Positions 5,216 to 54,381 of a stretch of DNA of 64,000 nt are shown here, piece after piece. The stretch lies in the NCBI GenBank assembly GCA_963924565.1, contig OZ004608.1, positions 25,854,001 through 25,918,000 of the forward strand, in the 5' to 3' direction. The stretch's first letter is position 1. Each line of letters opens with the position of its first letter. The translations under genes were made by a program, and so were the position numbers. Below the pieces are notes generated by a model. That model saw only the letters and a program-made list of their open reading frames with translations. It did not search any database and was not told the origin of the DNA. This stretch comes from Ascidiella aspersa (lineage: Eukaryota).

Positions 5216-5218
5216 AAA

Positions 5219-25453: not shown

Positions 25454-25560
25454 TATGTGGCCCACGGTGTGCTTTGGTTTTTGACCCGCAGCACAAATAT
25501 TCAGTTGCAGGCTTTTGAAATTGCATCAGGGCATCATGACAACCATATTTTGCTCTAATC

Positions 25561-29473: not shown

Positions 29474-32400
29474 ATGCATCTTCAAGTAATTTCTCTTGTG
29501 TTTGTGTTGTTGTTTGACGCTAGTCACTCTACAAGTCAAAGTAATTCTGGTAAGTAGTTAAATAGCTAATACAAAACAATTGTGTTGACGTTGGTTTGAT
29601 ATTTAAAGGTAAGTGTCTGCCACGAAGCAAAAGTAAAGCTGACGCTGTGGGAAGACCTTGTCGCAAGTTGTGCTACGGACAAGGAGACAAAAGGTGTAAA
29701 GGGTCAAAGATTTGCATTTGTGATCATGAATGTGGGCTTTCGTGCATTAATGAAGGTAATGCTTGTTTTGTAAAGATAAATAGCGAATACATCAAGCTTT
29801 CGGATGTTGCCATAGAGTTCTTAATTTTGAGTATGCGTCTACAGTAAATAGGTTACATAGCCTATAATTCTCAGCAAAGTACAACTTTTCTTTAGACGAG
29901 GGTCAAATTACCTTTATATTCTTACATAGAAAATTTTTGTTCGTTGCCCCCGGCAATTCCGCATATGAGTCAAATTCGAATTCACCGCGAAACAAATCAA
30001 GGTCTGTTATCTATTATCAAAAATCCCCCGTATCGCTACAACGATTTAGCAGTCTACGAATGTCTACCGGGTTTCCATCTTCACAACCCCGTGAAGCATA
30101 TGTGTCATGGAAAGAGAAACTGGACTAACCTTCGACAATCCCGATGCGTCCGTGAGTATAAATATCGTAGTTTTGAACCGTGTAGTTAGGTTTGAAACAA
30201 AACACGAAATACAAGACCAATTCCTGCTATACAGAGTTGTTATAGTGGTAGTACATGTACTTGACATTACAGGTTCTTGCAAGTCTCGTAACATTTGGAA
30301 AGTAATTTCACTCGGCATAGCTTGTGGTGTGGAGTGTTTGGTAGATCAAGACTGCTCACAAAGCGAGCAATGCTTGTGCGATGGGCACTGTGGGAGATCC
30401 TGCACTAATCCAAGTAAATATATTTTTAGAACCTATACAATAGGTTAAAACAATTCGAAATTGAGAAATAAAATATGTTTTTGGTGCCATTTAATTGTTA
30501 CTAATCATTATGACTGTACTAAACTGAAAAAAAATCTTGAAAAAGTAATAATATTTCGACTGATCATTTTCACTATCTTTCCTGTTTTTGTTTACTTTTA
30601 TTTTTGTAGACGTGGATTGCGGATCGGCGGGCATCGTTGCAAATGCCACCATCCGATACACAGGTTCGGGATTGAAAAAAATGGCCCACTACTTCTGTGA
30701 CAGAGGATTCTACTTGTACTATGGTTCGCCCTCGCGAAAGTGCACCGGGTCAGGTATCTACGACGGAAATCTGCCGGTTTGTCGAGGTTAGTGTAATTCG
30801 CTAATACGGATGCAAGGGCAAAAGAGCGGCTTTCGTGCACATGTAGTTTCGCTAGATCTATGACTTTCAAGTCAAAAATCGTTTACAAAATGCATAAAAT
30901 TTGTTAAAATTACTCAAACTGTAATGAGCGTTGCTAAGTTGTCATTCATTTAAAAAGATTATTAAAATTTAGTTTTGAATTGCATCGAACAACATTTTAA
31001 CTGTATTATGTCTTCAATAGAGCAACGTGAGTTATACGCGTGTCGGCAGATATTGAAATTATTCTATTTGCTATTTTGATAATATACTGCTTGTTATTTT
31101 TTTGCAATTATTTTCTTGATACTACAGTGCTGTTTAAATTACTGTATTCCTTGTAATACGTCAAAATAACTCATATTTTAAGTCAAACAATATTCGCCGT
31201 TGACTAATGTGTATAGAATTCTTGATCATTTCGTCCCAATGTGCTTTTAGGATAAACAATATTCGCCGTAGGCCACTTAGTTATGACTAATGTGTAGAAT
31301 TCCTTTGTCTTGTTTATCATTTCGTTCCAATGCGCTATGTGTGATCTCTGTTATTAACTTCCACGGTATAATACGTCAAAATTACTCACATTTTAGGAGA
31401 AACAATATTCGCCGTAGGCTACTTAGTTATGACTAATGTGTAGAATTCCTTTGTCTTGTTTATCATTTCGTCCCAATGCGCTATATATGCTCTCTGTTAT
31501 TTACTTCCGCAACACATAAAGGTTGTATTGAAACATTAACCGGCAAAGTAATAATAATCAAAAACAGGTTATTTGGTAAGTGTTACCACAGGAGCCGGTA
31601 GAGTAATTACAAGAGGTGCTGCTTTTCATTATTATTCAGCAAAGTTGATTCCATAACTTTGGTCTCATGACCAGCTTAAAAGCTTGCCCTTTTAATGAGG
31701 TTATTATCAAAACAATTTGTTTTCCGTTTATTGTACAAGCGTTCAGTGTCATTCACCTTGACGAAGGCGGCTTGAATAGCTTGCCGAAACGTTGGTCGAA
31801 AATTCAAATTACCAGAGGAGCTGTTTTTTCATTTGTATTACTATGCCTGGTAGCAACAGTTTATATGTTGGGAGCCACTAGTTTAAATCCCAAAAAAAAC
31901 GATAAGTGCTGCAACAAAAAATATTACAGAAACGTTTCAACTTCTTGGCCTTGGTTTAAACTTGAATTATTTGCTATACACTAAATTTGAAAACTAAATT
32001 TTTTTTCGTTCTACCTTAAAAAAGTGGATTTAAGCAGAACTCTTTAGTAAAAAAGCGTTGGTAAACATCTCGTTTAATTGCATTTTCTATAATATTCCTT
32101 GCAGAAATTGAATGCAGTGACCCTCTGCCATCTATGGTAAGCATGGGTGGAGGAATCAAAGACTATTTTCCCGGTCCTTTTTACGTCGGACAAACCTTTA
32201 CCTTCACCTGTCCTCCAACCCACAACCTGTTGGGTGATCCGAATAGAACTTGCGAAGAGGATGGAACCTGGAGCGGAAAACCCACTGTTTGCTCGTTAAA
32301 AGGTGTCGTTTAACAGCTAAACAAAAATAAAATATTAAATTACAATTCCTTAAAATAATAAAGATGTAACTTGAACAAAGCTAAATCTCAAACGTTTACC

Positions 32401-35400
32401 AAAAGCTATAGCTACTTTTATGGGCTTTGTAATTTGTTCTACGTTTGATTACAAACTTCAGAGTTTCTTCGCCAATGTGAAATCAATCAAATTAATTAAA
32501 GAGAAAATTTAGGTTTAACTAACTTTTTCTCCTATATAAATACTCTCTCTTAAATTTAAACACAATTTTTAAAAATATTGTACTTTTGTTTTTAAGTGTG
32601 TCTTTTAGCACAGGGCTTCGCAATATCGCCAAAACTTCTCTTCTAGCGTCATTTTTTGGCTTGTCTTATACTTATTTTGATACTTAGATTCTGGCAACAT
32701 GAACAACGCGGCAAATTGTCCACATCCGGGAGTCCCTATAAACGGCCGTATAAAGTCGCAGGCCAACTTCAGTGTAAAAAGCCTTGTTCAGTTTGAGTGC
32801 GATGACAGTTACTTGATGGTGGGAGATCAAACGCAGGAGTGCTTGTATTTTCTTCAGTGGAGTGGAGGCGCCGCTCCCAAGTGCATTAGTGAGTTCAGTT
32901 TGATGGACGAGAAGCTTTTTCTTTTAAAGTTACGCAAAACGTCCGATAGCGCTTGCTGTTAAATAATTTTGTTATTTCTACTTCTGGGTAGCAAAAAATT
33001 TCGACAAAAAAATTTTCGTAAATTTTTTAGTTGGTAGGCTATATTCCTTAGTTGTTTTGCAACGTGAATGGAAAATATATAGGATAATAAATTACAGTAA
33101 CTATACTAAAAGACCATATGTAAATTATATAGCGGTGATATTTAGACGGTTTATAAAAACAGGTATTAAACAAAACAAATGCTTTATGTTTATAAAAATA
33201 TATATTCAAAGTTTACATAAATCAATATTTCCGTATGAATACAGGTATTATCAGTTGTACCAAATGTGGGAAATGCAATCTTAGTGGCATTTTTTACAAA
33301 CACCAAACGATGGTGCCACACGCTTTACTCTTTTAACAACACCTATAGGTAGTGTGCAGCTAGGCTAAAATTAAAAATGCAGCAATTATGGCATTTATGT
33401 TGCCACCTGCAAAAAGTGGAACAAGCGGTATGTCGGTCAAACAAAAAACAAGGTTTTCTCACGTTGAAAGGTCCATCGCTCAACTCGGTTTAATTGTTAA
33501 TAGCCAACAACGACAGAGCTACGCCTTTGTGGCGCTGTGAGATCAACGTATTGCCGTACCGCATTTAGACTATTGCTTTAATGTTGTTTTCGTACAAATT
33601 ACACCAGCCAAGCTTCTGGATATCTTTAAAGATAAAATGCCCAACCGCGAGGAGTTCGTTACCGGTCCGCTTACTACGTAAAATACCATTTTTAAGGACA
33701 GTCCGTGATATAATGTCAGTTTTAATCCGGTCCGCAATGCAAAAAGCATAGCTGATTCCAGCGCAACCACACTGGATGATAAAATTCTAATCAGTTGCGT
33801 GCTTATCTCTTTTTTTTGAGTTGATGGACTTCTTTTTTTTGAGTTGATGGACTCTACACTCTACAGGTGTTTGAGAATTTCACAGGCGGTTTTACATAAT
33901 ATTTACATTTTAGCCACCTTTTTGTCGTTTTATACATGTTTGTTTGTTTTGTTTTTTCTGTACAGTAACTGATGTGTACGGCAAATAAAAAGTAAAAATT
34001 TACGAAATTATTTAATGCCTTATACCTGTTTATTTAAACATTCTAAATATCATCAGATCCGTAAGAAAGAATATTTCTTCTACATTTTCTTGACTGCGTG
34101 AGATTCCATAGGTTCGAAAGTCTTTCAGCGTATACCTACAGCAGATTCTATATCTCGTAATCGATTAAAATACCACAACCACAACATTTACTAGTTTTTT
34201 TTATTGTTCTTCTTGCCCCAGATCCAGATTACAGATCACAGTCACGCAACGGAATTGAAAGGATCCAATCCGACGTGGAAACATTTTTTCGAAAATCTTA
34301 CGACCAAAGTCCTGATCGTTCATCGGGAGGCTCAGGCTCAACAGAGCTGTACTTTGTTATTGACGCTTCGTCGGGAGATGAAAACGATTACCTGATGGAC
34401 AACCTTCCAATTATTGTAAAAAGCTTTCTACAAAAGGTGATATCAAACCGCGTTGAAATAGATTTAAATATATTTGTCTTTTGGAGACTTTTCAGTTCCG
34501 CAGGACTAGACATTATTATATCCTTACAGTTTGTTTATCATAAGGTGGTCCTTACGGTCAACCTGGTGCCCTCACCTGCTGGAACTCTATTGGGGAACCC
34601 TGCTCTTAAAAACTAAAAATGAAAAATACAAATGTCTATTACAATTACCAAACCAGATAAACACACTCGATATGGAAAATAGAGCAAACCTCCTGTTGAA
34701 TAACTGTATATATGTCCTTCATTACATTTACTGTATCATCGGAATATCATGCATGGTTTGTTTAACAGGTATTAAACGAGTCGATCAGTGAGCACCGTGT
34801 AGGAATTATTATGTTTGCTGCAAAAAGCGTAGTGCTGCAAGAAATCAAAGAGAAAGTCTATTCAACAACACAAATTGTCAATACGATGTCTCGAATTTCT
34901 AAAGATAAAGGTACCAAAAAATGAATATAAGAGTTTCCCTTCCGTATCTAAGCTTATACCTATAAGGATCTAGTAAAAGCCAACCAACCGATATTTATTA
35001 ACGACTCGAAGTTGTATCGTGCTTTATCAAAGGCCTAAAGCAGGGGTTCTCAAACGTGGCCCTCGGCGCCCCCCGAAGGTCACGGAGCGGTCATTGGGTG
35101 GCCACGGGCATAACACTCATGGATGTTAACCTTTTTTGTAACGCTTTCTAACACATTTTTCTGACACACTTTTAGACTCGTCAGTAGGGATGTTTAAAGT
35201 AGAGTATTCGATCCATTTATTTGTGCTGTTAGCCGAGCAACTAACGTGTAATGCAAGGTACAGAGGTTTTGAAATTTCTCTAAAGGGCGGTAAGTTGAAA
35301 ATGATATATTCAATCGTATAACGCATTACGTACGCTACAGCTGCAGGGTCAATTTTTCTCAAGGTCAATTTTAGGTTAATTTTAGGCCAATTTTCAGCGA

Positions 35401-38400
35401 GGTTAAGTACACTACAGGTCATTCGTCAAGTAATAGAAATACATTAATAAAACGAAAATCGAGAAATCATTGACGAATGTTGTGAATATAAAAATACTTT
35501 GGCGGAGTCCAAGAACAAGCTTTGTAATGACTAACTAAGTTAATTTAAGTTCAATTTACTAATTGACTGATTTATTAATTTTTTAGAAAGTAAGCGCATT
35601 TATTTGTTAGTTAATGGCTATATTTTTTACATACATGAAGAAGTCAAACAAGTGAAAACACGTTAAATAGTATGCTAGGTTTTTTTTACAAGCAGGTGGG
35701 CATGGGGGTTGAGAGCCTTTCAAAGGGAGCCACGAGGGTTGAGAGCCTTTAAAAGGGGGCCACGAAGCATAAAAGGTTGAGAACCACTGGCCTAAAGAAT
35801 ACAATAGCGCCAAAAGACACAAAACAATGTAAAATAATAAACAAACATCCCAGAAAGGTAATAGACGCCTTTCGTTGAGTGTTAGTTGTTAAAACAAAAA
35901 TAAACGCTTATTGTTGTAATTTCCTGGTCATCCTTGCCACACGTAATGCAACAAAATTTGTTTAATATTGTAACTATGGTTTCTGCAGAGAATATTCGTG
36001 ATCGATTGGGAAGAGTAAGTTTAATTCGTCAAGGAGTAGCAAAATTGTCAGAAACTATTGAAAAGTCGTTCAACCAGATCGATAGTCGGATGAAACCAAG
36101 GCTTGTTTTTTTTCTATTAAACGGTTTGTTATGATCTTTATATGGACTGTGGTTGTACATTGTTTGTTATATATTACTATCGTAGATTTTACCAGTCTTG
36201 TATATGTTTTATATTATACCAGAGCAAACCAGAGTTGACGAAACAACATTGGGCTATATGACAAAAATGCATTCTATTTTCCGTGCAAACATTCCTACGG
36301 TAAATATTACATCTTCGTCAAGTATTTTAAGAAAACTTGTAAGACAATAATTCTGTTCCTCTTAGTTTTTTGTTCACTTTACATGCGACGGATGCAAGCT
36401 CCTTTTGAGAAGGCTTAAACGTGGCTTCCTTAAACTACTTTCCTCTGTAAGCCACTTGAGTATCTCTCAACCTCCGTTTGGATTGGATGATGAAGAGTCT
36501 TCGCTAATTCCAAAACGCAAAGGTAATAAACCTTCAATGCGCACCGTGCATTTCTATCACAGTGTACAAAATACTTAAATGCAAGTCGCGAAATACGTAC
36601 AACTATTAACATTTTACAACACAATATATAATGTATTTGCTTCAATGCGCACCGTGCATTTCCATCACAGTGTACAAAATACTTAAATGCAAGTCGCGAA
36701 ATACGTACAACTATTAACATTTTACAACACAATATATAATGTATTTGACCTAGCTAATCTAATACAATTAAGCGCAGTGTATGATATTCTTCATTAGGCC
36801 TATGACATCATGTATAGATGTAACGTTACGTCTCCCCTAAATACCCCCAAAAATAAACTCGCCCCTGGTCATCATATTATGTTTGGCTGATATGAAACTA
36901 ATTGTTTTGCAGAACCTTCGCTAAACATATCTAGTTGTGGAAAGGCTGGCAACCTGCAAAAACTTAAAAAAAGTTTGTCATCAGTTGCAAAAATTTATTC
37001 GGGTTCGGAAGCTAAAAAAGGAGCTTGGCCCTGGCACGTTTTGATTTCCAAAAACAACTCTTCTCCGAATGTAAGTTTTGTTTTTGTTTAATTTGTTTAA
37101 AATCTGCAACGGCGTGATTTTACAGCAGACGCCACGGTGCAAGAATTATTGCGCAGAAGAGAAAGTTTGATATAGCTACTCTAATCATTTAAAATTGTGC
37201 ATTGAGAATATAGCTAATGCGACGAAAATATAATGTGCACAAATGTGTAACAAAATTAACTCACTTGTCTATCTCAAATCAACGAAGTGTAGTAATTAAG
37301 AAAACTGCTGTTTAATCTGTCCTGCAAATGTTTATGGTTTTTAAAATTTGTTTAAATTCTATTGGTCGCGACTGAATTTTACACAATCATTAACACCAAA
37401 TTGCACGAACAACCCATTTAATTGATTTTGAAACCAAGGTTTATTATAATTCGAGATGCAGAAGTTTTACAATATTATTACCACGTTCGCCACCTGAACT
37501 ATAAGGATTGTGGAGAACAAAGTTACCAATCTTTTCGTCATTTTCGGAGAGGTGGTATCATCACCACTTAGTGTAAGAAGCATATGGTTTAAGTCAGTCC
37601 ATGAGCAATTTGATAACATCTTCCGTTATGGACTGTTTATCACGATTTAGGATCCATACTAAAAATGTATCTTCCCATTCAAGAAGTTTATGCGTAAATT
37701 TATTCTACAAAATCCAAAAAATAAAAAAATACATTGAATGAGCTATTCTAGGATTCTGCTGCCTTGTTCTATGTAGTGGACATAAATTTCTTCTTTCGCT
37801 ATTGTTTTGCTTGTGCTAATCATGTAATTATCTTGCTGTGTGTGGTGTCATATTCTTACGTGGTGAAACATTTACACACTAAAAGTTAAATTAAAAAATG
37901 TTTTTTTTAATATGGAGATTCTAAACGGATATATCGGAGGAGGTTCGCTAGTCAATCATCAGTGGGTTATCACAGCAGCGCACATCTTTAACGACTTCGT
38001 CGGTAGAAATAAAATTCCCAGTCACTGGTTGGTAATGGGTGAGTAAGAAGAAAACATAATAAAACTAAATTCCAGGGTTGATTAGGTGTGTGATCAACTT
38101 AACGTACACTATATATATTTTGTCCAAACTATTTTCTAATAGTTTGTTGGACAAAAGAAAAGTAGCCTTGAACAATATTATTAAAAAAATCGCAAGATAA
38201 AATTAAGTTTACTAAAGTTTTTTTTCTAAAATTCATTTTACAAATGTTCGCAAAAGAAATCGATACAATCAAATATTTCGTGAAAAACAATGCAAGATCT
38301 AATTCATTTTTCTTGGATTTATTAGGTTTTATTAACTAAATTACTTTCATTTGTTTAAATTTCAAACAGCAAGCGCACAGCTCTTTATCGTTAGTTTTAC

Positions 38401-41160
38401 AGTAGAGCGACAAAAAACTAACAAATTCCACACCAGGGCGCTTTTTTGCAGAAAATTGTCTCAAGTGCACTGCCGAAATAAATATATAACGAAAATTTAG
38501 TTTAAAACTACAAACAATATCATTCACTTTTGAAATATTAACCAATGTTTTTTTCAAACTGCGAAAAAAGCTTTTACCTACGTAGCGTGAAACTCCATTT
38601 ATAATCCCTATTTACCATAAAGTGATTTTGTTTTTCAGGGACCAATAAAAGAAACTTGGAGAATGAAAAGCCAAAGGCGTTTTTAGCCGAAAGGATTGTT
38701 CTTCATCCTGAATACAAGCAATTTAACAGTTCTTACATAATCTTAGACTTCGATGTTGCTCTGGTAAGTTAGCTGACTTCCAAGCTATTATTAAACGTTT
38801 CATGTTTTTACTACGATTACATCGTTTTTACGCACATGCAGATAAGAATTGGAAGGGAATATATCAGGCACGGAGAGGTGTTTCAACCACTGCAAAATGT
38901 AGGTTGGGTGGATTACGGAGAGTTCGTTAAACCAGTTTGTCTTCCATGTTCGCCTAATAACTGCTTAAGCAAGCTTGTGTTATCACCTAACACCCGGGAG
39001 CACGATAGATGCCGGATGGAAGGTAAACTTTGTTTAGTGGCTCTTACAGAAACAATATCAGTGTAAATGGAATAAAAAAACAATAAATACTGTAGATGAA
39101 AATGAAGTTGTTTGTACTAACGGATTGAGCAAGCATTGGCGTATGGTTGTTTCTCGACTCGTTCCTTTCTGAGCCCGTATATTTCAATTGGTAGAGCGAG
39201 GGTCCCGGCTTGACCGGAGGTCGTGAGTTCGAACCTCACTGCAGGCTAGTTATTTTCTAGCTTGTCCTGCTTGCATCATAGATCAACAGATTCGGTGAGT
39301 CTGTAATGACTTTCGCTGTATAAATTATACGTAAGCCGTAATCGTTGGTCAAAAAGCAGCTTCAGAAGGGCTAGATCTCAGTTATTAACACATTGTGTCT
39401 GAATGTTTCATACTTTAGATAAATGAAAAGTCTCCTTATTTCCCGGCAACCTTCACCAGCTCATTGCTCAAACAAAATAGATTTTATCCCGAATCGTAGT
39501 TTTAATACTAATGATTGGGATTCCTAAATTTCGAGCTACTAAACCTGTGTTTGTTTGAGGTGCCTACATGTCCAGCATTCGAAATCGCAGTTTGGACATC
39601 GTCACTGGGTTCGGAGTGACGAGCGATGATAATTGGTTTAATTCTGACGTTCTTCGTCAAGGAGCAATCCGGGTGAAATCAAAGGAGAAGTAAGCAATTT
39701 AAGGGATGCGTTTATTGTAACTAATTTCAAACAATTGGAAAATCAATCAAAACCATTGGACGATAATAATTAATCAACTTCCTGAAGTTCGCTTAACGCA
39801 AAATTTTATTTGAGTTATATATTATTTTATATATAACTACACCATGGATAATTATTTGAAGTGTGATTCCATTTAATATAGCCTACTTCTTAACATTGCT
39901 CTACAATTTTAACTTTGTAACGATAATACGATAGACTTAACACTATTAAACAACAATTCAAACTGTATTAAGAAAGAAAATATTGTAAGTGTTTGTCATC
40001 ATTGTAATACAATTTAGTATATAACGGTAGCACCTGATTTCCATATTTTGAGTTCGACTATTAAAACGATACTTTATAACTATTCAGTTATATTTTCCGT
40101 CGTTTACACCAAAACTAAATTATTGTTTTCCTCTTCGTTTATACCGCAATTACGTAACGTTTGGTCGCAGGTGTAAACTGGCAGTCTCGTCAATGAGCAA
40201 TGAGCGCAAACAAACTTTTAAGTTCACAGAACGTATGTTGTGTGCACTTGGAGGGTCAAGGCACAACCCTGTCGACGCTTGCAAAGGGGATAGTGGAGGT
40301 CCATTAGTAAGAGAGGTGAAGATTTTTATTTCTTCTTAAAATCCGGACAACCTATCTCCATAAGGTTACGAACTTATAAATCGAAGTTGAGTATTTTTAA
40401 CGCACCTGGTGAAATGATTTATGATACTGCTTTCCTAACTTTTACGACGTACTTTTAATGTAATTTTTGACACACAATCAGATACTATTATATTATAAAA
40501 GAACAAAATAGTGTATATACATGTAATTTACTATCAATGTAAATATTAGCTTGTATATAAGAAAATATCACTCATGTCTCACATAATTATGTTTTTTTGA
40601 ATATTAAAAAAGCATTTCTGACGGTTCACCATTCACCAGATTAAGAAACACTGCCCTATACCCCTGCTGGTTTGAAAGCATCGATTAACGCATTCGTTAA
40701 AAGAAGAAGCATGCATTATTTTAATATATTTTTTGTTACAAACGTCTCTTTTTTAATAACTATAAGGGCCAGTAGTGAATATTTAATCCTGGTCATGCAG
40801 TTCGCCACTTGATCCACTCTTGCAGGCTGCTTTTCATTGTTGGTTTTATGTAGTATATATTTTGTAAATGAAAGGTACTACAAACAACAAAAAGGGTTTA
40901 AGTGCAATATGGCGGTGGGATCTGCTATTTGTTCGTAATAACATAGCCGTCATTTTAAAATATTGCAGATTGTTAATCGATTCACACATGAAAGCTGCTG
41001 GGTACAATACGGCATCGTCAGTTGGGGAGCACCTTGTGGAACTACAGATTATCCTGGTTTTTACACCAATATATTTACTGTTTTACCTTGGATTAAGAAA
41101 ACCATGTTCAAGTCGACCGGAAATACTGTTGCAAGTACTAACGACGGTAATGTTCGTTAA
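29474..41160 (+). CDS. Complete module A: secreted factor B/C2-like protease (signal-WAP-CCP-WAP-CCPx3-vWA-SP1), ~979 aa
   Basis: Exons 29474-29549 (MHLQVISLVFVLLFDASHS), 29609-29755, 29930-30151, 30273-30413, 30610-30786, 32105-32302, 32688-32888, 34222-34436, 34769-34910, 35989-36123, 36223-36299, 36366-36522, 36913-37070, 37918-38038, 38639-38763, 38842-39022, 39560-39689, 40171-40315, 40969-41160. Sum 2940 nt, open frame, intact His (TAAH, 37981)/Asp/Ser triad. Confidence 0.87.
31153..31510 (+). repeat. Degenerate ~145-bp tandem repeat, ~2.5 copies (also ~63540-63897)
   Basis: aaacaatattcgccgt..tgactaatgtgta..tcatttcgt.ccaatg recurs three times. Confidence 0.85.
31600..31845 (+). mobile_element. 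Penelope pseudo-LTR-like remnant with a hammerhead-like core
   Basis: Direct repeat aattac(a/c)agagg(t/a)gctg at ~31606 and ~31807, flanking caccTTGACGAaggc..gccGAAACGTTggt. Confidence 0.45.
33244..33640 (+). pseudogene. Penelope-like element remnant: Cys linker plus GIY-YIG endonuclease
   Basis: CTKCGKCNL, then KCSNYGIYVATCKKWNKRYVGQTKNKVFSR*KVHR. Confidence 0.7.
35041..35789. mobile_element. hAT MITE in a vWA intron
   Basis: caggggttctcaaac...ggttgagaaccactg TIR with perfect 8-bp TSD gcctaaag. Confidence 0.85.
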
Positions 41161-41522: not shown

Positions 41523-44500
41523 AAATTTGTTTTTCAAATCCAGAAGCAATAGAACCGGGCCGCAAATGCCGCAAGCCTTGTCAAACTAATGCTGATTGCA
41601 AAGGTCAGCTGAAACGGTGTTTGTGCGATGGCTTATGCGGAAAATCCTGCTACAATCCAGGTAGGAAACGACACCGTTTCGTTCCTTACTAGTTTATTCA
41701 TATTTAATTTATACATCCATAAAGAAGTGAACTATTTCACAGCATTGGAATATTATTTAATTGTAATTAAATATTTGTTATCGGTTTTGCACTGTAGTTG
41801 CGATCTGTTCTGACTTACCTCCGTTTCCAAACGGCCATATTAAGGGCGATCGCACTTACAACAAATCGGTAACGTACACTTGTTCTAATGGATACTTCCT
41901 CGTTGGAAATAGCACCAGACAATGCAGATCAGATAAGCAATGGAGTGGAAAGCCACCTAAGTGTGAAAGTAAATTTGGTTTGTACTTATCACCAATGCTT
42001 GTAATTCTACTGTTCATAATCACGCATTCTGTATTGTATTATCTACGTTTCGTAACCCCAACGTATCTTGATTTCTTTTTAGCACTTAAATTGTTCAAAC
42101 TTGACGTAGGCGAACAGAATAAAAAGGTATAGATTACTTTCCAATAGAAAACATTTACTGAAAAAATAACTTCAAGTATGTTTTAATTTTCTGATAGAAA
42201 AATAACCAGCCAATGTGTGGCTCTGAATTTACAAAAAGAAGTAAATATTACACAAATTTTACCATAATTTTAGACTTGATACCCATAGTGTGTTTATTAT
42301 ATCCAACGTTAGGATTTTTTTGCAGAGTCTCGATGCAATAACATTCAAAGTTTACCGAACGGATTAGTTGAAACAGATAGAGATGTTGGCGGTATTACAA
42401 TCTTCTTATGCAATTCAGGATACCAATTGGTTGGTTTACGGTATATTACCTGCCAAACAAACGCCAGTTGGAGCAATCAACCACCCACATGCCACCGTAA
42501 GCCTATAGATTTTGCGTAAATGTAATAGTGGAAAAATTACATATAGACTGATCTTTTTGATTTAAAGCAATTGTTATTTCATCAAAAGGGCACAATAACG
42601 AAGCTTATCACAGCAACTCTATAAATGTTTTTTTTTAATTTAGATTAAAATGCAATAAAATGCTCAACTTGTGATTTTAGCGATTTCATGTTTTAACCTG
42701 CCACCAATCAAGCACGGTTACATAAAGGGAAACAATACTTTTAACGAAACGGTTACTTATCATTGCAACGATGGATATGAAATTATGGGACGCTTTCACA
42801 ATAGAACTTGCAACTCGGACGGTACATGGAGCGACGAGGCTCCGCGTTGTCAAAGTAAGAGAAAACGGTGTTACTTTCATTTACTAAAAGATACTAAAGT
42901 AAAGACCGACGTTTTTTGCCAAAATTAAAACCGATTTTTTGTCAATCGTTTTTCGATCATTGTTTTCATACAATAGTGAGTTTTTCCGACTTGAAAACAA
43001 GTCTGACTTACAACCAATGTGTGCAGAACGTCTTTGCAGTGAGCTGCAATCAATTCAAAACGGCAAAATAGAGTACTCGACTAGTATTGGCAGCATAGCA
43101 ATCTACGTTTGTAACATTGGTTATACACTCAACGGAGCACGATATCAAACCTGCGGCCTGAATGCATTGTGGAGTGGTTCTGTTCCGACTTGCAATCGTG
43201 AGTATGGTTAAAAAATTATTCTTAGTAGCCTTAAAATATCGTTCTTGGGCTGTGCTCCGCAATCTTTGTTACTTGAGGCACCCCAACAAAACTGAAACAA
43301 TCCGGCGCAAACCTACGAAATATATTTCGATTGGCTTTGGACACCACATCAGCAAATGGAGCGATTTATGACTAAATATGCCGCAGGCGCTAAAAAGTTT
43401 TCTTGTTACATTCCTTTTTCTTCTGATTTTGCGGTTTTACGGTTATTCTAAAGCCTTTTAAGTGCTGAAAATTCGACCCCTTGCAATAGCGGATCAAAGA
43501 ACATTGAAGACTGGTATTAACATATTCAAACAATTAAACCTGACACATGTGCTTTTTACATTTTTGCCTAATTTATTTTTCTCGGAACTGCAGCCAAGAT
43601 TAATTTATACAATCACAAAATTCCACTTCCTTTGAAAATGATATTTCATTGGTTTGATTTTTTTATCGGATAGATACTATTTTCCTTTCAATAAGGTATA
43701 AAGTTTGAAAACCATTGTTGAATATTTTTACTCCTGATATAGTTGAGTTAGTTCAAAAATTATTTTGAAATTCACATCCTGGCGATTAAACGTGACATGG
43801 GTTTCAAAAAAAGTTATAAATAAGATGGAAAAGTTTATATAACAGGAAAAGTTCATACACCTATACTGGATTATTTCACAAAAAATGCAAATTTTTCGTG
43901 TTAATTCTACTGATTTTACCCTGAAAAACTTAAGTAAAAACCCTCAGGAACTGCGCGGTACACCTGCTGACATGGTGTCGACATACCGGTTGCGCAGCGC
44001 TGTTCGATACCCGATATCATATCACTAAAACGTTATATCTAAAGTGAAACATATTCTATAGTTGTTTGGTGTTTTTGTCAACTTTACGCGTTGTTTGGTG
44101 TCGGTTCAAATATGCAGTAATGCCTAATATTATATGACTAAGGATTTGTCTTCATAAACGAACTCCAAAATATAAATTAAAAGTAACGGTGCTTCAATAT
44201 ATGTTTTTAATCATGCATGTTTATAGCAATCACATGTGTGATTCCTTCGATTCGAAATGGAAAATTTACCGGGAAGCGAACCTATGGTCAAACTATTAAA
44301 TATACTTGCAATGTTGGGTACACCCTTCAAGGTCGTAAAACAAGAACATGTAGATCAGATCGACGTTGGAGCGGGGTTTCTCCGATTTGCCAAGGCTAGT
44401 AAATGTATCTTTTGTATTTTTCATACAACTGTAATACTTCAACCGTTTAATCGATGTAAACTTGGATTTGTAGTTGTGACATGTCAGTTTCCTTCTCCCA

Positions 44501-47500
44501 TATTAAACGGGCAAGTATATGGAGCGACAAACTACCGCGATACAGTACGCTATGTGTGCAATCCGGACTTTACTTTAAACGGAACAAGTAGTAGAACTTG
44601 CAGATCGGATGGAACCTGGAGTGGAGAGCAACCTTTTTGTCAAGGTACGGGTTTTTATTACAGATGGCCAATGTTACAATTAAATTATGCTGAGGTGTTC
44701 CACTTTGTCGACTCTTCAGAACCGTCAAGCAAAGCAAGCTTTGTTCTTTCCGGTTTTATGGAAAACACTATTTATGTATAAGTTGCTAGACGAAATATTC
44801 GCATATATAAGTGCAAAATATTATTTGACCAATAAAATTGTTACTAATTTTATTCAGGTTAGTACTTACCGACGTTGTACATAAGCTTTTGCACCGAACG
44901 TTTAGAAACTATAGGGGGTAAATTTACCATAAAACTTTTCATCTTTAGCCTATCATTGAAATAATTTAAAACGGAAAACTTTTCATATTTTAGAATCTAT
45001 AACTTTCTAAACGAGTGGTTCCTAATAGTTGTATATTGCGGTACATTAGGAAATATAAATCGCGGCACATTTTCTAAAACAACTAAACCGTGATCCTAAC
45101 CCTTACAAGACGGATAGGCGTTAGGTAAATACTTTAATATTATAATTTTTTAATAGATAGTGGGCATTCATGTCTCGCATACGTCGATATGTTTATTTCT
45201 GATACGAATAGTTTATTTTTCCGACTTACAAAACGTTTCTCTACATTACATTTGCCTGGCATAATAGAGAAAAATATTTAAAGAAAGCGATCACATACAG
45301 ATACTGTTATAAAAATAAATAGAGATGATTCAACGCATAACTTAAATATTAGCCATCCTCCTAACGACGCACCTGAAGTAGGCCTACTCTGAAAACTAAA
45401 ATAAAAGTTAAAAAAAAGGATAAAAATGTCGCTTATAAAGGGTTAATAAATTCTATGAATTTATTTGGCTATGCCTTAGGGTGGATTGACTTTGAGATAT
45501 TAGTCCTGTAATTAGGAATGATTTCGGCTTTTTAGTGCTGACAACGATGGTTATAACTAGGGCCATTTTTATTTGAACCTAAAAAAACAATTTTTTAACT
45601 TTATTTTTATCAAATTTTAACTTTATTTTAACCTAACGGAATTGCTCGTTTGTAGAGGCCACAGTTCTTCCTTGAATTGATGCCAGTTACCCAAACATAA
45701 TATTTTGTCGATTTCAGATCCAAACGTGATATTTTGTCGCAAAGTCAAGGTGTTTTATGGATTATAAAAAGTGCATCGGGTTTTTTTGGCGATAGTTTTA
45801 GCTTGCTTAGGAATTTTTGTATTACAGAAGTAGGCTATTTCTAAAATCCAAATTGTTGATCTTCGAAAAGACCACGTTTATGAAGATAAAGTATTTTATA
45901 AAAAAATTTTAAATACGTAACAATAAAGAAAAAAATGGACAATTTGCGATAAAAGTTACTGCTAATCCAAGTGGGCATTGTGCCATATTTCCTGCTTTTA
46001 TGGGTTAATATGGTTTAATTGTGTCGCAGTTCCTGATTTACAATGCTTCCACGACGATTTTTACAAAAACTACTCTCAAGAAACACAAAAACTTTGTCAA
46101 AGGCTATAATTTGACAAATTTTGACTTTATTAATAAATTTTAACTTTATTGTAAATTTTAACTTTATTTTAACCTATAAATCCTAAAAACGACTTTATTA
46201 TTTGATTCCTGGACAGATGAGCTCCTTAAAAAATTTTAACTTTATTGACTTTTGCGGGCCCTAGTTATAACTTAGAAATGCAAGATTTTTAATATAGCTT
46301 AATGTGCTTAGGCTTTAGGCTAAAATCTATAATACAGTTAATGCATTGTGCAAGGTTTGACATTGCACACATCAAAAATCTCAAAACATCTCGTGACCAC
46401 TGATTTAGTGTCATATTTTAATTGAAAATGCACAACACAGAAACGGACTACAGTTTGTGCGGGCAATCCGTTTCCGATGAAAAGAAATATTTGGGTAGAA
46501 TAATTAGCGGAAAACCATCAAAAGAACGCTCCTGGCCGTGGCATACTCTAATCTCTCTTGAGCGCGGCAACCAATATAGAGTGTGTAATGCCTTACAGCT
46601 CTAATTCAGTTTTGTTTATAAATATAACATATAGTAAACGAACGATTCTTCAGCAGATAAAATACAACGCTAAGAACAAAACTTGGAATATACAGTAGAA
46701 ACAGTTTGTCCTTTCCTATATTTTGCAGACATATAACGGTTGGCTATTGGGTGCTGGATCTCTTATAAACAACAACTTTGTACTTACGACAGCTCATTTG
46801 GTTGAATTCAGCAAAAACGTAGTGGATCTACTTCTAACCTTTGGTAAGTAGTGTTATATTATACAATGCAAAATAGAAATATGTGCTGTGACAAACAGTC
46901 TATATTTGTAATGTGCCGATTTGTATTGTACGTCTATTTAGACCTAATTGTATGCGATAGGTTTAATTTAAACAACACGTGAATATGACTGTCACACAAT
47001 TTTTTAATCGACTATTACCAGCGATATTAACATATATTTTGTTACACCATTATTTTACCAAACTATTTGTGAACATTAGGAATGTTACGCCGCCCATTAA
47101 ACAATTCGGACACTTTAGCCTCTTCGGTCAGGTTATTCGGAGGATCTAGAATATTTATTCACCCATCATATGTTAGAAACGAATATGACAACGATGTAGC
47201 TCTGGTAAGTTAATTTGTGTAGTTTGCTTAACTATAGCAATCTTGGTGTTGTCGATAGTTGAATCAGTGCGAAATCTTTGTTAATATGTCATACTAATCA
47301 AGTTATTGTACTTAAAAAATACAGTATTTTAGGCCTACATGTCTAAGTTATCTAATACCCGTTAGTCCATCGCTCAAATTTTGCTGGCTACATGCCCTCT
47401 TTTTTTCTGTTGAAAAGACGTAATAAAAATCACGACTATTTTTCTCATTTCTTTTTAAGGACAATGACTCAAGTGTGTTCTATAGGTAAGAATTGGTGAG

Positions 47501-50500
47501 GAATTTAGTTTCGTCAACGGAAGTTGGAAAGTTGTTTCTCCAGGGGGTCGGGTAGAGTATACAGCTTACATACGACCAGTATGTCTGCCTTGCATGGAAA
47601 ACACTTGTGTTGGGAAACATCTGCGCAAGATATCAACTGGTGTAAGTTTGTTGAATGGTAGCGAATCAAATGAAGAAAAATGTAAGATTGAAGGTAAATA
47701 TTAGTGTTATAAACAGTTACAATCTACTAAGACGAACAAATAAACAGCCCGTAACTACTTAATGCAGCATTTTATGTCAGGCTTCTAGGGACATTCTGGG
47801 CTTGGAAGCAAAATTTTATTAAAAATCTTTTAATAGACCCAGTTAGGCTTAGTTCAAGATATTCAGTTGCTCTGAAGAAATGCTATGTTTACCTATTAAC
47901 ATAGCATTTCGATGCTATGTTTACCTATTATAAAAACACACAATGAATTCATGCAAAGTGCCCCCAAAATGGAAAAAGATTCTCTCAAATCGCAAACATG
48001 CTATACCAAATGTATAAATGAGATTCGGATTTGCGTTTTGTATCCAGTTTGTAAAAGAGGTGGTTGACCGGATGATTTACATTGGAATGTCAGATCCGTG
48101 CCGCGGGCCGAAGGTTTTGATTTTCAGTTTAAAACAATCCACACTGTTACGTGAGAATACATTATTTTCATAACCTGGTCAACAAATTCAGTACGAAGTT
48201 TTTAGCCTAATAGTCAAAATGTACAAAATGTTTAAAAAACATTTTTAGATCACTAAAAAACGAACACATTTCTCAGAAAGAAGCATATTAAAATATTCTA
48301 AGACATTACTCATGATAACCACAAATCTTAGGAATATGGACATTTCCAGGTTTTAAACATGAGTGAAGTCATGACCTACTGTAGTTTTAGCCCAAGACAC
48401 TATAGTCTCCAATGACTTACATCCAAGTCAATGCATTTATCCGAAAGACAGAATTCCCTACAACACTGCAAATACAAGTATGGTTGTTCTGGAAAACCAA
48501 CATAATAACAGGAAATGCAACGATAAAATAGTTCTTAGATTTTTGCTTCCATTTGTTTTATTTTGGAATAGTTGCATGACGTAGTCAATTAACTTGTTTA
48601 GAAGTTCATATTTTTTTAACGCCTAAATTGTAATGTTTCAGGGGATTGGTTATTAAAAGACGAACAATCTAACAGCAGTTCACCACTTTTTACAATCATT
48701 GGCTTTGGCTATACCAGCATTAAGAAAAGACCCAACCGGTTGCAAGAAGGATTGGTGGAGATTAGGAAAGAAAAATAGTAAATTGTTATAAGACAATAAT
48801 TCTGTGTAGGCCTATTGGTTTCTAGACAAAAACAAGAATATAGAATATATAAGAAGAAATTCCCAAATGATAGGATGAAATATTTTTTTTACTTACTATT
48901 TTAAACATGTTTATGCCCACTTGAGCTTCCCTCTTAATATTGTAGATTCGTTAGGTCTTCACTGACAAAGTACACACAGGCCGCAAGAAGATAATAATTA
49001 TCGTTTTGGGTATAACTAGTACCAGTTGAATATAATACGGTGTCTTATAGGCTACCTCAGTGGTCGGCAACCGCCGGTCCGCAGCAGGGTATGCAGATTA
49101 AATTTTGATTTAAACCCAAACCGTAGGCTTCGTATAAGCCGTAAAAAGTCAAAAACAATTAAATGTATATTTACCTTCAAAACACATTGTCTTTCGTTTA
49201 AATATAATCCATGGTTAATTGCTATAATAAAAAATCACTATTAACCAGGCACTCGTGAAGTTCAAAACAAACCAATGTGATGTGGCTATATTAGGCTACA
49301 TAGCACGTTCACAACATCCTAAAATGCATTTTTTTGTAAAATCTAACTACACGTATTTACAATATATCAAAAACGCCCATAATAATGTTTTTTCTGGGAA
49401 AGTTTTCGACAACGTGTGCATTTTATTAGTTCATTGAAAAAGTTGCATTAAATTTCCTTTATTGAGCATTTGTTAAATTTCAGTTTTAAACCGGTCCGCA
49501 GTGCAAAAAAGGTTGCCGACCCCTGTTATACCCCACGGACCACGGCACATCTGGCATAGTCTCACGGTACACCAGTGTGCAGCGGCCCACTGGTTGTGCG
49601 GCATTGGTTTTAAGAGAGTCGAGTAAGAGATATTTCCGAGTTAGTAAAAACGAAATAATTACCTACCGATACATGATCAAGTCAGCGTTTTTATAAAACC
49701 AAGGTGATAACCGTTTGTTGTTGTACTGTGTAGCGTGTAGCCCTGTTGTATTGTAGTGGCAAGCTTGTATTCGGTCAGCGTGTTCTGATGAATGTAAGTA
49801 GTTGCCACGTGCGCGACACGCAAACACAAAACACACGAAAAAGGCAAATGCGAACACGTACATAAAAAGGCATAAGACACGCTTCGCTTAACATGCTGCA
49901 GGGGCTACATTACTCCCCCCCAGAAGCGGGTTAAAATTTTTACGTGGCCGACCTCGTCTTCTGGGAACGTGCAGTTGCACTGGTTGCGTTGGGTCTACAT
50001 AAGCAGGTTTAAGGCGATCAACAGAGATAGTTTGTCGCTGTCCCGCAATGTCTACAACAAAATACTTAGCGTGGCGTTCGAAAACTTTATAAGGGCCCTC
50101 ATAAGGAGGATTTAAAGGGGGGCGGTAACCATCTTTGCGAACAAAAACATATGCACAACTTAACAAGACACGCGGAACATCAATGATAACATTACGATGC
50201 TTTGACATTGGCGTGGGGAGAAAGTTACCAATTGAGTTTCGAAGCGTTTGAAGAAACTCTGTCGGCTCACCCAAGTTAGTTGCGTGCGGGATAAAATCCC
50301 CAGGCAGGGAAATAGTTGTTCCATAGACTAACTCCGCGCTTGATGCTTTTAAATCTTTTTTTGGCGTAGCCCGAATTCCTAATAGAACCCAGGGCAATTC
50401 GTCTATCCAGTTTGCTGCCTGCATTCGTGCCATTAAAACGCTTTTCAAATGCCGATGAAAGCGTTCCACGAGACCATTGGCTTGGGGATGGTAAGCTGTA

Positions 50501-53500
50501 GTGCATCTATGCTTAATTCCAATAAGCTGAGTGACTTTAGCCCACAGCTGCGACGTAAATTGTGGCCCTCTATCGGAGGACATTTCCGAAGGAACGCCAA
50601 AGCGGGCAATCCAATGAAATGCAAATGCACGTGCACACGTTTCTGTTGTAGCGTCAGGCATTGGGACTGCTTCCGGCCACCTGGAAAATCGATCTACAAT
50701 TGTTAGCAAATACCTGTTGCCTTTCGATGTGGGTAGAGGTCCAACGATATCCACGTTGATATGTTGAAATCGAGCTGTTGGAATGGGATAGGTCTTCAAT
50801 GGTGAATGAACATGGCGTTGCACTTTTGCTGTTTGACACTTGATGCATTGTCGGCTCCATTCCTGTATTTCTTTGTTTAAGCCATGCCAAACAAACTTAG
50901 ATGCTATGAGCTTTTGAGTTGCACGAATAGACGGATGGGCTAGACCGTGAACTGCGTCAAAAACTTTTTTCCGCCAAGTTTTTGGTATAATAGGCCGTGG
51001 ACTATCTGTTGAAATGTCACACAAAATAGTTACACTGGACGATCCAATACAAATATCTTCGAGTTTTAATTTTGAAATAGCGGTACGGTAGGCTTGCACT
51101 TCCGGATCCTGCTGTGCTGCTGCTAACTGAAAGTAATCAATGTCAATTAGGTCCTGCTGAACCGAATTAAGAAATACACGAGAAAGTGCATCTGCGACCA
51201 CATTTTGCTTACCTTCTACATGTCTGACGTCTGTAGTATATTCGGAGATCGCAGTAAGGTGGCGTTGTTGTCTCGCAGACCAAGGATCAGCAACTTTTTT
51301 GAAAGCAAAGGTGAGAGGCTTATGATCGGTGTACGCTGTAAATGCTCTTCCTTCGAGAAAGTAGCGAAAATGTCTGACGGACAGGTGCAACGCAAGGAGT
51401 TCGCGATCGAACGCACTGAATCGAGTTTCGGCTGGTCGTAAATGCCTGCTAAAAAATGCAAGTGGCATCCACGTATTGTGAATGTATTGTTCGAGAACTG
51501 CCCCGACAGCTGTTTCGGATGCGTCGACTGTCAAGGCGGTTGGAGCCTGGTGCTGCGGATGAACCAGCGTAGTGGCATGCTCCAGTGCTGCTTTTGCTTT
51601 GTTGAAAGCACTCTGTAGTTCATCAGTCCAAACTATTGTCTTGCTTTTTGTAGACAATGCTTTGTATATCGGGGACATTATTCGTGCGGCAGCTGGAATA
51701 AATCTGTGGTAAAAATTGACCATACCTGCAAATTCTTGTAGTGCTCTAAGTGTTGTTGGTTTTGGAAAGCGACGGATTGTTAAAACTTTGTCTGGAAGTG
51801 GTCTTGCTCCATTGCAGTCGACGCGATGACCAAGGAAATCAATTGTAGACTTTCCAAACGAGCACTTGTTTAGGTTAATAACAAGTCCGTTATCTGCAAG
51901 TCTTTGAAAAATTTGTTTGAGGTGTACGAGGTGCTGCTTTATTGACTTACTGGCAACTAGAATGTCGTCTAGATAAACGAATGCAAAATCAAGCGTTTGA
52001 CAAACTGTATCCATAAGGCGTTGGAACGCTTGTGCGGCGTTTTTTAACCCAAACGGCATACGTAGAAATTCAAACAAACCAAAAGGTGTGATCACCGCAG
52101 TTTTTGCTATATCTGCTTTGGCAACCGGTACTTGATGATAACCTCTTACCAAATCAATTTTAGAAAATACTTTTGCTCCCGCTAAACGTGCGGAGAAATC
52201 CTGAATATGCGGTATAGCATACCTGTCAGGTTGAGTAGCTGCATTCAATCGCCTGTAATCGCCGCAAGGTCTCCAGTCGCCAGATGACTTTGGAACCATA
52301 TGAAGTGGTGACGACCATGGACTAGATGATCTCCTGATTATTCCTAATTCCATCATTTTGCGGCGCGCTTTGCTTTGCGTTGCTGATTGGAATGCTGGCA
52401 AATGATTTAGCATTCAGCAGGCAATTGTGCCGGAGGTCTACTAAGAGAGAATGCGCTCTAAAGAAATCTGCGCCTAAAAGAGGCTTTGCTACAGCGGCTA
52501 CAGTAAAGCGCCAGCAAAATTTACCAGATGCCAGATCTAAACATATGTTTCTCGTTCCATATGTATTTATGTTACTTCCGTTGGCTGCGATAAGTTTGGG
52601 GCCGCTGGATTGCTTCCGTTTTTGAAGAGATGAGGCAGGGTAAACGCTGATTTCCGCTCCTGTGTCGATCAAAAAGTTTCTTGCGGATATTTTGTCCCAT
52701 ACGTAAAACAAATTCCCTCTTTTGCCGACCGCTGAAGTATTTAGTAGCGGCCGGCTGTGTCGTTTCCCTGAAACGAACAAGGTTGCTGACATTTCCTCGC
52801 TTTGTCTTTAAACCTTTCGTGGAAGAAACACAAACCACCGGATTCGTTCCTTTGTATTTTTGTCGTTGAAAACGTTGGCTTCTTCTTGATTTTTGCGATA
52901 GTAAACTGCTGATCATCATTTCGCGCTTGCCACAACATGTCAGCACGTTGAGCCAGAAAGCGAGGATCTTCGAAACTTTCTTTTACCAAAACAACAGGAA
53001 TGTCTTCTGGCATAGTTTGCAGAAAGAGGTATCCGAAAAGAAAGCATGGCACATGGCCAGCCATAAGCGAGAGCATTTCGTCCATAAGCTGCGACGGCTT
53101 GCGATCTCCAAGCTCAGTTATGTGCAAAAGCTTTGCTGCTCGTTCATACTCGGAGAGGCTGAATGTGCTCAGTAATCGCTCCTTTATTGCGTTGTACTTG
53201 TTCCTTTCTGGTGGATCTTCCAATAAATCGATCAGTCTACTTGCGGTATGCTGGTCCAAGGCAAATATGACGTGGAAGTACTTAGTTTCATCGCACGTAA
53301 TTTTTCTTAAGTGAAATTGCGCTTCAGACTGTTGAAACCATACTCGAGGTTGCTCGACCCAAAACGTCGGAAGCTTCAGAGAAACGGCGCTTTGCATGCT
53401 TGAATCTTGAATTTTCAACCATTAAACTCGTCTATAGCCAAGAAATTTCGTTTCTTGGACCGGGGTCACCAAATGTAGTGGCAAGCTTGTATTCGGTCAG

Positions 53501-54381
53501 CGTGTTCTGATGAATGTAAGTAGTTGCCACGTGCGCGACACGCAAACACAAAACACACGAAAAAGGCAAATGCGAACACGTACATAAAAAGGCATAAGAC
53601 ACGCTTCGCTTAACATGCTGCAGGGGCTACAGTATAGATGATAAACTGAACCAGTTTAGTATCAATAACAAGATTATTACGAAAACATACAATCAGTTTT
53701 CTAAAATTCCAAAAAAACACAAATATTTACTTTGGTCCATTAGTCGGACTCTTGTGGGTTGCGAAAATAATGAGAATATTCGAACTCATCTTGATCGTGT
53801 CTACTAATATCATAACAGGAACCTGAACAGTACACACATCTTATTTTTTTATTTAATCCAGTTGCCGTGATGCTGCCAAACATGCAAGCTGGGTACTGCG
53901 TACTACTCTCTATTATTCAAAATCGATGTTGTGTGCCATTGGTAGGAATGTCAAACATCGTGTGAATGCCTGTAAAGGCGATAGCGGAGGAATGATGGCA
54001 CGACAGGTAGCATTACAGCAGTCTCCAATACACAGTTTGCCAACTTTAAGAACAAATATAACTTTTTTGTTTTAAATATAGTTCAACCATTTTATCATTA
54101 TTGAATTTGCTTAATTTGTAGTGGCTATTGCCTACGTATATATTTTGAAAATTGGTTCAAATTCATCATCGTAATTTTACAATCAACTTAATTTCTTCCA
54201 GATCGTCGACACCGAAACAAAACAGTCTTGTTGGGTTCAAGTGGGCATTGTAAGCTGGGGCATGCAGTGTAACAGCACCATGGAAGTAAACGGTATAAAA
54301 CTTCCCATGCCAGGATTCTACACAAAAGTGTCCGTCGTCATGAGTTGGATAAAAAGCACGTTGAAGTCGAATGTCCCTTAA
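41523..54381 (+). CDS. Module B, second copy (WAP-like, 6 CCP, SP2)
   Basis: Exons 41523-41660, 41798-41968, 42326-42496, 42681-42854, 43027-43197, 44227-44394, 44474-44644, 46441-46580, 46729-46843, 47080-47204, 47486-47693, 48642-48777, 53862-54006, 54202-54381. Confidence 0.87.
49888..52792 (-). pseudogene. pol: Frameshifted pol
   Basis: Split into ORFs 52322-52792 and 49888-52413 by loss of the equivalent of 16243-16442. Confidence 0.92.
52741..53397 (-). CDS. gag: Gag, second copy
   Basis: Same as the first copy except I->V. Confidence 0.88.
   Translation of the reverse strand: MQSAVSLKLPTFWVEQPRVWFQQSEAQFHLRKITCDETKYFHVIFALDQHTASRLIDLLEDPPERNKYNAIKERLLSTFSLSEYERAAKLLHITELGDRKPSQLMDEMLSLMAGHVPCFLFGYLFLQTMPEDIPVVLVKESFEDPRFLAQRADMLWQARNDDQQFTIAKIKKKPTFSTTKIQRNESGGLCFFHERFKDKARKCQQPCSFQGNDTAGRY

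Follow-up and report, generated by a model that had tools for sequence, protein, structure and literature searches.

The subject of this analysis is a predicted factor-B-like gene of the ascidian Ascidiella aspersa, located within a 64,000-nt stretch of genomic DNA (contig OZ004608.1, positions 25,854,001 to 25,918,000 of the forward strand; hereafter the window, in whose own numbering positions are given). Between positions 29474 and 54381 of this strand lie two consecutive blocks of exons: module A, which ends with a first serine protease domain (SP1), and module B, which begins with a WAP-like domain and ends with a second protease domain (SP2). We conclude, with a probability of roughly 0.85, that the two modules form one gene and that the 376-nt gap between them is a phase-1 intron. 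An earlier note, made from the letters of this DNA, had proposed such a gene, and the proposal is supported by an open chain across both modules, by the DNA of the ascidian Clavelina lepadiformis, by paralogs within the Ascidiella genome and by a gap that holds no convincing signal exon. Rather than an intergenic spacer, the gap would be an intron that goes back to a common ancestor with other ascidians. The gene itself would be part of an ascidian-specific expansion of factor-B-like genes in which a protease is followed by WAP and CCP modules, represented in this region by an array of six young copies.

Exons were picked independently from open frames and splice-site context, two small vWA exons being added by frame and phase. 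Domain searches were run exon by exon, and the joined translation was used only for the frame check and for comparison with homologs. When joined, the exons reproduce exactly the model put forward in the earlier note, with 33 exons and 5139 nt encoding 1712 aa with a single terminal stop. The order of domains is signal peptide, WAP-like domain, CCP, WAP, three CCPs, a degenerate vWA, SP1, WAP-like domain, six CCPs and SP2.

In module A, exon 1 (29474-29549) supplies the ATG and a signal peptide with a hydrophobic core of 3.3 (10-residue Kyte-Doolittle mean) and ends at a phase-1 donor, GTAAGT. Exon 2 (29609-29755; donor GTAATG at 29755|29756) encodes WAP-like domain 1 (WAP1), which has eight cysteines and no Pfam hit and is ~53% identical to residues 9-70, at the N-terminus, of the Clavelina protein XP_076821631.1. 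It is followed by CCP1 in exon 3 (29930-30151; Pfam Sushi E 2.8e-8) and by WAP2 in exon 4 (30273-30413), which at 25.1 bits (E 2e-5) lies above the Pfam WAP cut-off of 20.8 bits. Exons 5-7, all phase 1-1, encode CCP2 (30610-30786), CCP3 (32105-32302) and CCP4 (32688-32888), with Sushi E-values of 1.5e-4, 5e-10 and 3e-10, respectively. The diverged vWA occupies exons 8-12 (34222-34436, 34769-34910, 35989-36123, 36223-36299 and 36366-36522). Taken singly, none of these five exons matches Pfam; three of them are recognized, in the correct order, by a profile built from the vWA domains of ascidian factor B (E 4e-6, 8e-5 and 1e-3), and the same profile finds no vWA remnant in module B. SP1 is encoded by exons 13-19 (36913-37070, 37918-38038, 38639-38763, 38842-39022, 39560-39689, 40171-40315 and 40969-41146), the last of which matches Pfam Trypsin.

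Module B opens with exon 20 (41523-41660, phase 1-1), which encodes WAP-like domain 3 (WAP3) at 19.7 bits (E 0.0011), just below the cut-off. In WAP1, WAP2 and WAP3 alike, C-x-C stands at the place where the WAP domain has CC. Exons 21-26 (41798-41968, 42326-42496, 42681-42854, 43027-43197, 44227-44394 and 44474-44644) encode CCP5 to CCP10, each with a Sushi E-value of 1e-10 to 3e-13, such that all ten CCP exons of the gene match this family (E 1e-4 to 3e-13). Exons 27-33 (46441-46580, 46729-46843, 47080-47204, 47486-47693, 48642-48777, 53862-54006 and 54202-54381) encode SP2 and end with the stop codon TAA at 54379-54381.

At the junction itself, the last SP1 exon ends with ...STND plus one base and is followed by GTAATG. 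The phase-1 donor at 41146|41147, described previously as identical to that of exon 2, is therefore borne out by the sequence, as is the phase-1 acceptor tttttccag placed directly before the WAP-like exon at 41523. Together they delimit a GT..AG intron of 376 nt (41147-41522). Without splicing, SP1 would read on as GNVR into a TAA at 41158-41160, with AATAAA at 41164. The earlier note had held that no credible ATG plus signal exon lies in this gap. Nothing convincing is indeed present, although one weak, phase-compatible ATG exon (41229-41289) had gone unmentioned. This candidate was rejected as a signal exon because Arg and Glu interrupt its hydrophobic core, which reaches a score of 1.7 where the true signal reaches 3.3, and because its donor is weak.

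These features of the gap bear on the possibility that two adjacent genes are present, with module A ending at the TAA at 41158 and polyadenylated behind the AATAAA at 41164, and module B either supplied with a 5' exon of its own or trans-spliced at 41523. Such an arrangement would make sense of the stop and AATAAA directly past the donor and could draw on the ATG exon at 41229-41289. It would also not be foreign to tunicates, which use spliced-leader trans-splicing and operons, and the gene models of relatives that join the two modules are automatic ones, which can over-merge. We nevertheless regard two genes as very improbable. As a signal peptide the candidate exon would be poor, its donor is weak, and it falls in a bin of zero RNA depth. 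Furthermore, the WAP3 exon contains no in-frame ATG, and a module B mRNA that was separately started or trans-spliced there would consequently have neither start nor signal. The junctions of relatives, described below, stand against two genes as well.

The nearest public proteins to this gene are all ascidian, from Clavelina, Styela and Ciona. When the last SP1 exon was compared with 1.84 billion representative sequences, no near-identical protein was found, and the search led to the 1704-aa Clavelina protein XP_076821631.1, with two matched stretches, the best at residues 916-966. This entry, a RefSeq automatic prediction named "uncharacterized protein LOC143468357", contains by Pfam WAP, Sushi, VWA, Trypsin and Sushi domains and a second protease. 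In tblastn searches of the window it follows the order of the model from WAP1 through to the SP2 end, with successive matches to the end of SP1 (residues 907-966), WAP3 (962-1014) and a CCP. Matches to this protein and to a second Clavelina paralog fall in order along the window, the vWA parts of the two modules excepted, and WAP3 shares 57-59% identity with the WAP located after SP1 in the two Clavelina proteins. The second paralog, LOC143468237 (XP_076821428.1/XP_076821429.1, 1719/1717 aa, likewise uncharacterized), is 67% identical to the LOC143468357 protein over its full length.

The earlier note had suggested looking for a conserved junction in related species, and the two Clavelina genes provide it. 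Placed on its own locus, XP_076821631.1 has 19 exons up to the end of SP1, the same number as the Ascidiella model, and its SP1-WAP intron is a phase-1 intron of 60 nt with the donor GAAG|GTAATA and neither an in-frame stop nor AATAAA (13147|13208 in L031). The corresponding intron of LOC143468237 is also in phase 1 and measures 73 nt; it contains a stop but no AATAAA (8317|8391 in L039). A phase-1 junction with a G|GTAA donor is thus found in the window and in both Clavelina genes. Introns of 60 and 73 nt are too short to hold a terminator, a promoter and a first exon, which disfavours the two-gene explanation, and this argument, resting on Clavelina DNA rather than on automatic gene models, is not touched by over-merging. 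A search for transcript-derived fragments across the Clavelina junction, with the stop-free segment L031:12979-13353 as query, found none.

The proteins of LOC143468357 and LOC143468237 share with the Ascidiella model the order signal, WAP, CCP, WAP, three CCPs, vWA, SP1, WAP, CCPs and SP2. They differ in their second module, which has a vWA and two CCPs where Ascidiella module B has six CCPs and no vWA, in the length of the junction intron (60 and 73 nt, against 376 nt in Ascidiella) and in a sequence identity of only about 35-55% per exon. SP2 is catalytically dead in XP_076821631.1, whereas that of Ascidiella has a full triad. A predicted protein of Styela clava, XP_077969388.1 (1433 aa), similarly carries two factor-B-type proteases on one chain together with WAP, CCP and vWA domains. 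Its order is, however, CCP, WAP, CCP, SP, CCPs, WAP, CCP, vWA and SP, with a CCP rather than a WAP after the first protease, the vWA in the second unit and an S195N substitution in the second protease. A separate Clavelina entry, CAK8674528.1 (2903 aa), provides an example of over-merging, the two-protease gene being fused in it with the neighbouring gene for tubulin-specific chaperone D.

Searches of the whole Ascidiella assembly (308.6 Mb in 75 contigs) identified four diverged paralogs on contigs C8 and C9, whose last protease exon is 44-53% identical to that of SP1. In all four, a WAP exon lies 350-750 nt downstream of the protease on the same strand, with a phase-1 donor a few codons after the protease-ending motif PW(I/L)(K/R) and a phase-1 acceptor before the WAP exon; no ATG or signal exon is common to the four gaps. 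The retention of matching phase-1 sites without a shared gap exon again argues against two genes. Three of the paralogs (L007, L008 and L011) have a CCP exon downstream of the WAP exon, and in two there are nine to eleven further CCP exons within ten kb downstream; in the units near 9.28 Mb of C8, a CCP exon behind the WAP exon was not observed. In the paralogs near 15277459 and 16676092 of C9, a protease is succeeded inside 10 kb by a WAP and nine to eleven CCP exons, and a second protease does not appear in the span covered; Clavelina XP_076821299.1 (protease, WAP, CCPs, WAP, CCP) has a similar layout. In C8:9283701-9305543, factor-B-type protease exons and a WAP exon are repeated at least four times with a period of 7.2 kb, and each WAP exon is followed, 1.75 kb on, by the first protease exon of the next unit. 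This region represents either several genes in tandem or one longer poly-protease chain.

Reads from an RNA run with the same species label (X4), of which ~6% was read, cover the exons of SP1 and of module B at only 2-4x, with the first mate always on the minus strand, and in both modules they map to exons rather than introns. The depth is lower over SP1 exons 5 and 6, where the filtering of conserved stretches from read placement may play a part. Across the junction, depth is 0 at 41161-41357 and 0.52 at 41358-41554, the latter being the value expected from three reads starting at 41523. A variant at 41548 is present in 3/3 RNA reads, which indicates that these reads reach the 5' end of the WAP3 exon, with their upstream portions placed outside the gap. 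This pattern fits splicing from 41146 to 41523, as supportive and not decisive evidence.

The same data bear on a further scenario, compatible with a single gene, in which most transcripts are spliced from 41146 to 41523 and some are polyadenylated within the intron to give a one-protease isoform ending in GNVR. The TAA at 41158 and the AATAAA at 41164 are present in 6/6 copies of the array, which counts in favour of this scenario; these copies are, however, too young for identity to mean constraint. RNA depth is zero at 41161-41357, a finding limited by the fact that only about three reads reach the end of the exon, and the signals are not shared by relatives: the 60-nt Clavelina intron lacks both stop and AATAAA, the 73-nt intron has only the stop, and beyond the donors assigned in the four paralogs, 5 to 37 codons remain open in the read-through frame, against four here. 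We therefore consider such a second output unlikely.

Several observations weigh against the one-gene interpretation. A stop four codons past the SP1 donor with AATAAA behind it would suit the end of a gene, and phase compatibility between the two modules would arise by chance in about one case in three, which means that the sequence of the window alone does not prove one gene. Among the joints listed, all of them from contigs of an intronic high-copy repeat, there is no RNA read joining 41146 to 41523, at a depth of only a few reads. The proteins of relatives are automatic predictions, prone to over-merging, and the tree of protease domains does not resolve a one-to-one orthology of SP1 and SP2 with the Clavelina domains. 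Within the model, the WAP1 and vWA exons are below Pfam significance on their own, and the CCP9 exon (exon 25) requires a GC donor (AAG|GCTAGT; intron 44395-44473), as it also does in the preceding array copy (8286|8287). Finally, the mechanism proposed below is inference only, drawn from established chymotrypsin-fold zymogens; the single chain and the order of its domains were read from the sequence. As to the CCP9 donor, no GT donor compatible with the strong acceptor at 44474 fits, and a phase-2 GT donor at 44398 was discarded because no acceptor fits it.

The gene is part of an array. The window is a tandem repeat with a period of ~32-36 kb, in which positions 1-7940 equal 35946-43885 at 99.95% identity and later blocks agree at 99.6-99.8%. 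It contains one partial copy, one full copy and the beginning of a third. The preceding copy (1-18464, forward strand) is truncated at the start of the window and runs from vWA exon 3 onward, with its junction at 5201|5578 as in the full copy; the next copy (61861-64000, forward strand) is represented by signal, WAP1, CCP1, WAP2 and CCP2. With the last SP1 exon as a whole-genome query, six unit copies were found, all on the contig of the window, and in each the end of SP1 is followed by an SP2 end 9.1-13.3 kb downstream. Donor, acceptor and frame of the SP1-WAP3 junction are kept in 6/6 copies, but as these are at least 97% alike across the junction, their agreement carries no evolutionary signal. 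About 3.6 kb of the spacer between units (21766-25454) is not matched in the unit that comes next; the offset between units is 35945 before this segment and 32378 after it.

An array of this kind might be decaying or mis-assembled, and the 1712-aa protein might never be made. The 99.6-99.95% likeness of the copies would suit this explanation, as would the replacement of the SP1 catalytic His by Pro in one copy and the gaps with which the sixth copy aligns in an SP2 exon. Set against this, all 33 exons are open and have good splice sites, RNA reads lie on the exons and not the introns of both modules, and Clavelina possesses orthologous full-length genes. The stretch is also covered, with small differences, by contigs from two further runs that bear this species label. 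An unused frame is accordingly judged highly unlikely.

On their sequence, both proteases are of the factor B type, with the ...CLPC... insertion, and are 30-37% identical to the Ciona factor B (Bf) proteases over more than 300 residues. SP1 has the His/Asp/Ser triad with Asp189, Gly216 and Gly226 and the site K|IYSG at model residues 656|657; SP2 has the triad with Asn189 and the site R|IISG at 1383|1384. The two domains are 34% identical and have a common seven-exon phase pattern, which points to an old duplication. In the protease-domain tree both stand on very long branches with an unresolved fork, and whether this duplication occurred before or after the split from Clavelina is hence not settled. 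Among solved structures, the SP1 exon carrying ...CLPC... matches only chains of human factor B, and these weakly (E 0.19-0.67), whilst the equivalent SP2 exon finds a prophenoloxidase-activating enzyme first (E 0.032), ahead of factor B. When 26 ascidian factor-B-type protease domains were aligned, nearly all had K/R|(I/V)-x-x-G, Asp189 and no Cys after the catalytic His. The K/IYSG and R/IISG sites are consequently family traits, common to the ascidian factor B proteases compared, including the cloned Ciona Bf.

The integrity of these proteases varies between copies and species. In Clavelina XP_076821631.1, SP2 carries H57Q, S195G and D189S, whereas SP2 of the LOC143468237 protein is intact. 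In the preceding copy of the Ascidiella array, SP1 His57 is changed to Pro (2036-2038, against 37981-37983 in the full copy) by the sole nucleotide difference in the exon. The SP2 exon at 10622-10736 differs from that at 46729-46843 by V25F and E26G (exon numbering), adjacent changes just after the catalytic His, and elsewhere the two copies agree across 24 shared exons. Each of the four coding differences seen between copies in the window alters an amino acid. Residue 189 of SP2, which lies at the base of the specificity pocket, is Asn in three array copies and Asp in two, the sixth copy aligning only with gaps in SP2 exon 6; the exons carrying the catalytic His and Asp were covered in two of the six copies.

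The vWA is degenerate at its metal ion-dependent adhesion site (MIDAS), which here reads D-A-S-S-G, with the Thr lost and the Asp changed to Asn. The site is also degenerate in the first vWA of Clavelina XP_076821631.1; in the same alignment the Ciona Bf sequences keep DxSxS, T and D. With three MIDAS residues replaced, a canonical role in Mg-dependent C3b binding and the C3 convertase is unlikely.

How such a protein might work can be proposed by analogy with known zymogens. It would be secreted as a single-chain zymogen in which each protease has an activation site of the form Cys-Gly...(K/R)|I-x-S-G, and cuts after K656 and R1383 would free the activating N-termini. The cut chains would stay disulfide-linked through the Cys that precedes each site and the first Cys of VCLPC. 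SP1, on account of Asp189, Gly216 and Gly226, would be expected to cut after Lys or Arg and could in principle cut both sites, whilst SP2, with Asn189 in the full copy, probably has an altered specificity. The CCP arrays and WAP-like domains may serve as binding or regulatory modules in humoral defence, a role that is itself a guess from the family and from the diversity of the array. The earlier note went further and envisaged a self-cutting cascade on one chain. Such a cascade appears improbable, since two relatives, in Clavelina and Styela, manage without enzymatic activity of the second protease; the activation sites and Asp189 are moreover family traits, and one array copy carries Pro in place of SP1 His57. 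It is equally doubtful, if conceivable, that SP1 activates itself and SP2 as a two-step unit and that the array, by diversifying which protease is live and which residue occupies position 189, provides a small combinatorial repertoire of immune proteases.

The classical members of this family, factor B and C2, have one protease, which is C-terminal. Once cut by a factor-D-like enzyme, factor B joins C3b to form the C3 convertase, and an intact MIDAS is needed for its Mg-dependent binding of C3b. Human factor B lacks both the R/K|I-x-x-G activation site and Asp189. The Ascidiella gene resembles factor B and C2 in the CCP-vWA-protease order of module A (CCP2-4, vWA and SP1), module B being without a vWA. 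It differs from them in having two proteases, three WAP-like domains and ten CCPs, and in that SP1 is not C-terminal but is followed, in one open frame, by a WAP, six CCPs and SP2. Among ascidians, Bf has been cloned from Halocynthia and Ciona (for Ciona, Yoshizaki et al. 2005, as cited in PMC5465252). The Ciona set compared here comprised five entries, one of which is named complement factor B-1. Ciona Bf has an R/K|I-x-x-G activation site and Asp189 in common with the Ascidiella protein, but keeps the MIDAS that the latter has lost. Polyserases and ovochymases, which were high scorers with the last SP1 exon as query, are alike in carrying several chymotrypsin-fold proteases per chain, some of them inactive. 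They are built, however, from ordinary trypsin-type domains with CUB, LDLa, membrane anchors or further modules other than CCP and vWA, and have neither a CCP-vWA core nor a protease of the factor B type; no CUB, LDLa or membrane segments occur among the exons of the Ascidiella gene, and the likeness is one of principle only.

The earlier note knew of no described protein with this architecture. No publication on a factor-B-like protein that carries two proteases, or WAP domains, emerged from the literature search, and the Clavelina genome paper contains no discussion of a two-protease protein, but RefSeq already holds predicted, uncharacterized Clavelina proteins with this arrangement. It thus appears to be undescribed but not unique, existing in databases as unnamed predictions. 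If ascidians do conserve a lineage whose members combine a second protease and WAP-like domains with loss of the metal site, the factor B scaffold has been reused beyond the C3 convertase. The dead SP2 of Clavelina and Styela and the dead SP1 of one array copy add examples of the conversion of a protease into a pseudoprotease. For annotation, there is a warning that protease-then-WAP junctions in these genomes are introns and not gene ends. No new principle is involved, as multi-protease chains are known and databases already contain predicted proteins of the same type.

Several further features of the window lie outside the coding sequence. SP2 intron 5 contains a long terminal repeat (LTR) retrotransposon on the minus strand (49752-53631), bounded by identical direct repeats of 158 nt and carrying a DUF7041 ORF (open reading frame) as well as an 841-aa ORF for reverse transcriptase, RNase H and integrase domains. 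The element is also found in the preceding copy (13635-17714, minus strand). The SP1-to-SP2 spacing of 9.1-9.8 kb in the other four array copies, against 13.2 kb here, suggests that it is absent from them. In the intron between vWA and SP1, a 108-nt segment is present as a direct duplicate (36532-36747, and likewise 587-802). SP1 intron 4 includes a very high-copy repeat (39100-39400; contig depth ~1e5, against ~200 elsewhere) with a tRNA-like core that includes a gagttcgaacc box. ARAGORN calls no tRNA there, and the repeat is probably a tRNA-derived short interspersed nuclear element.

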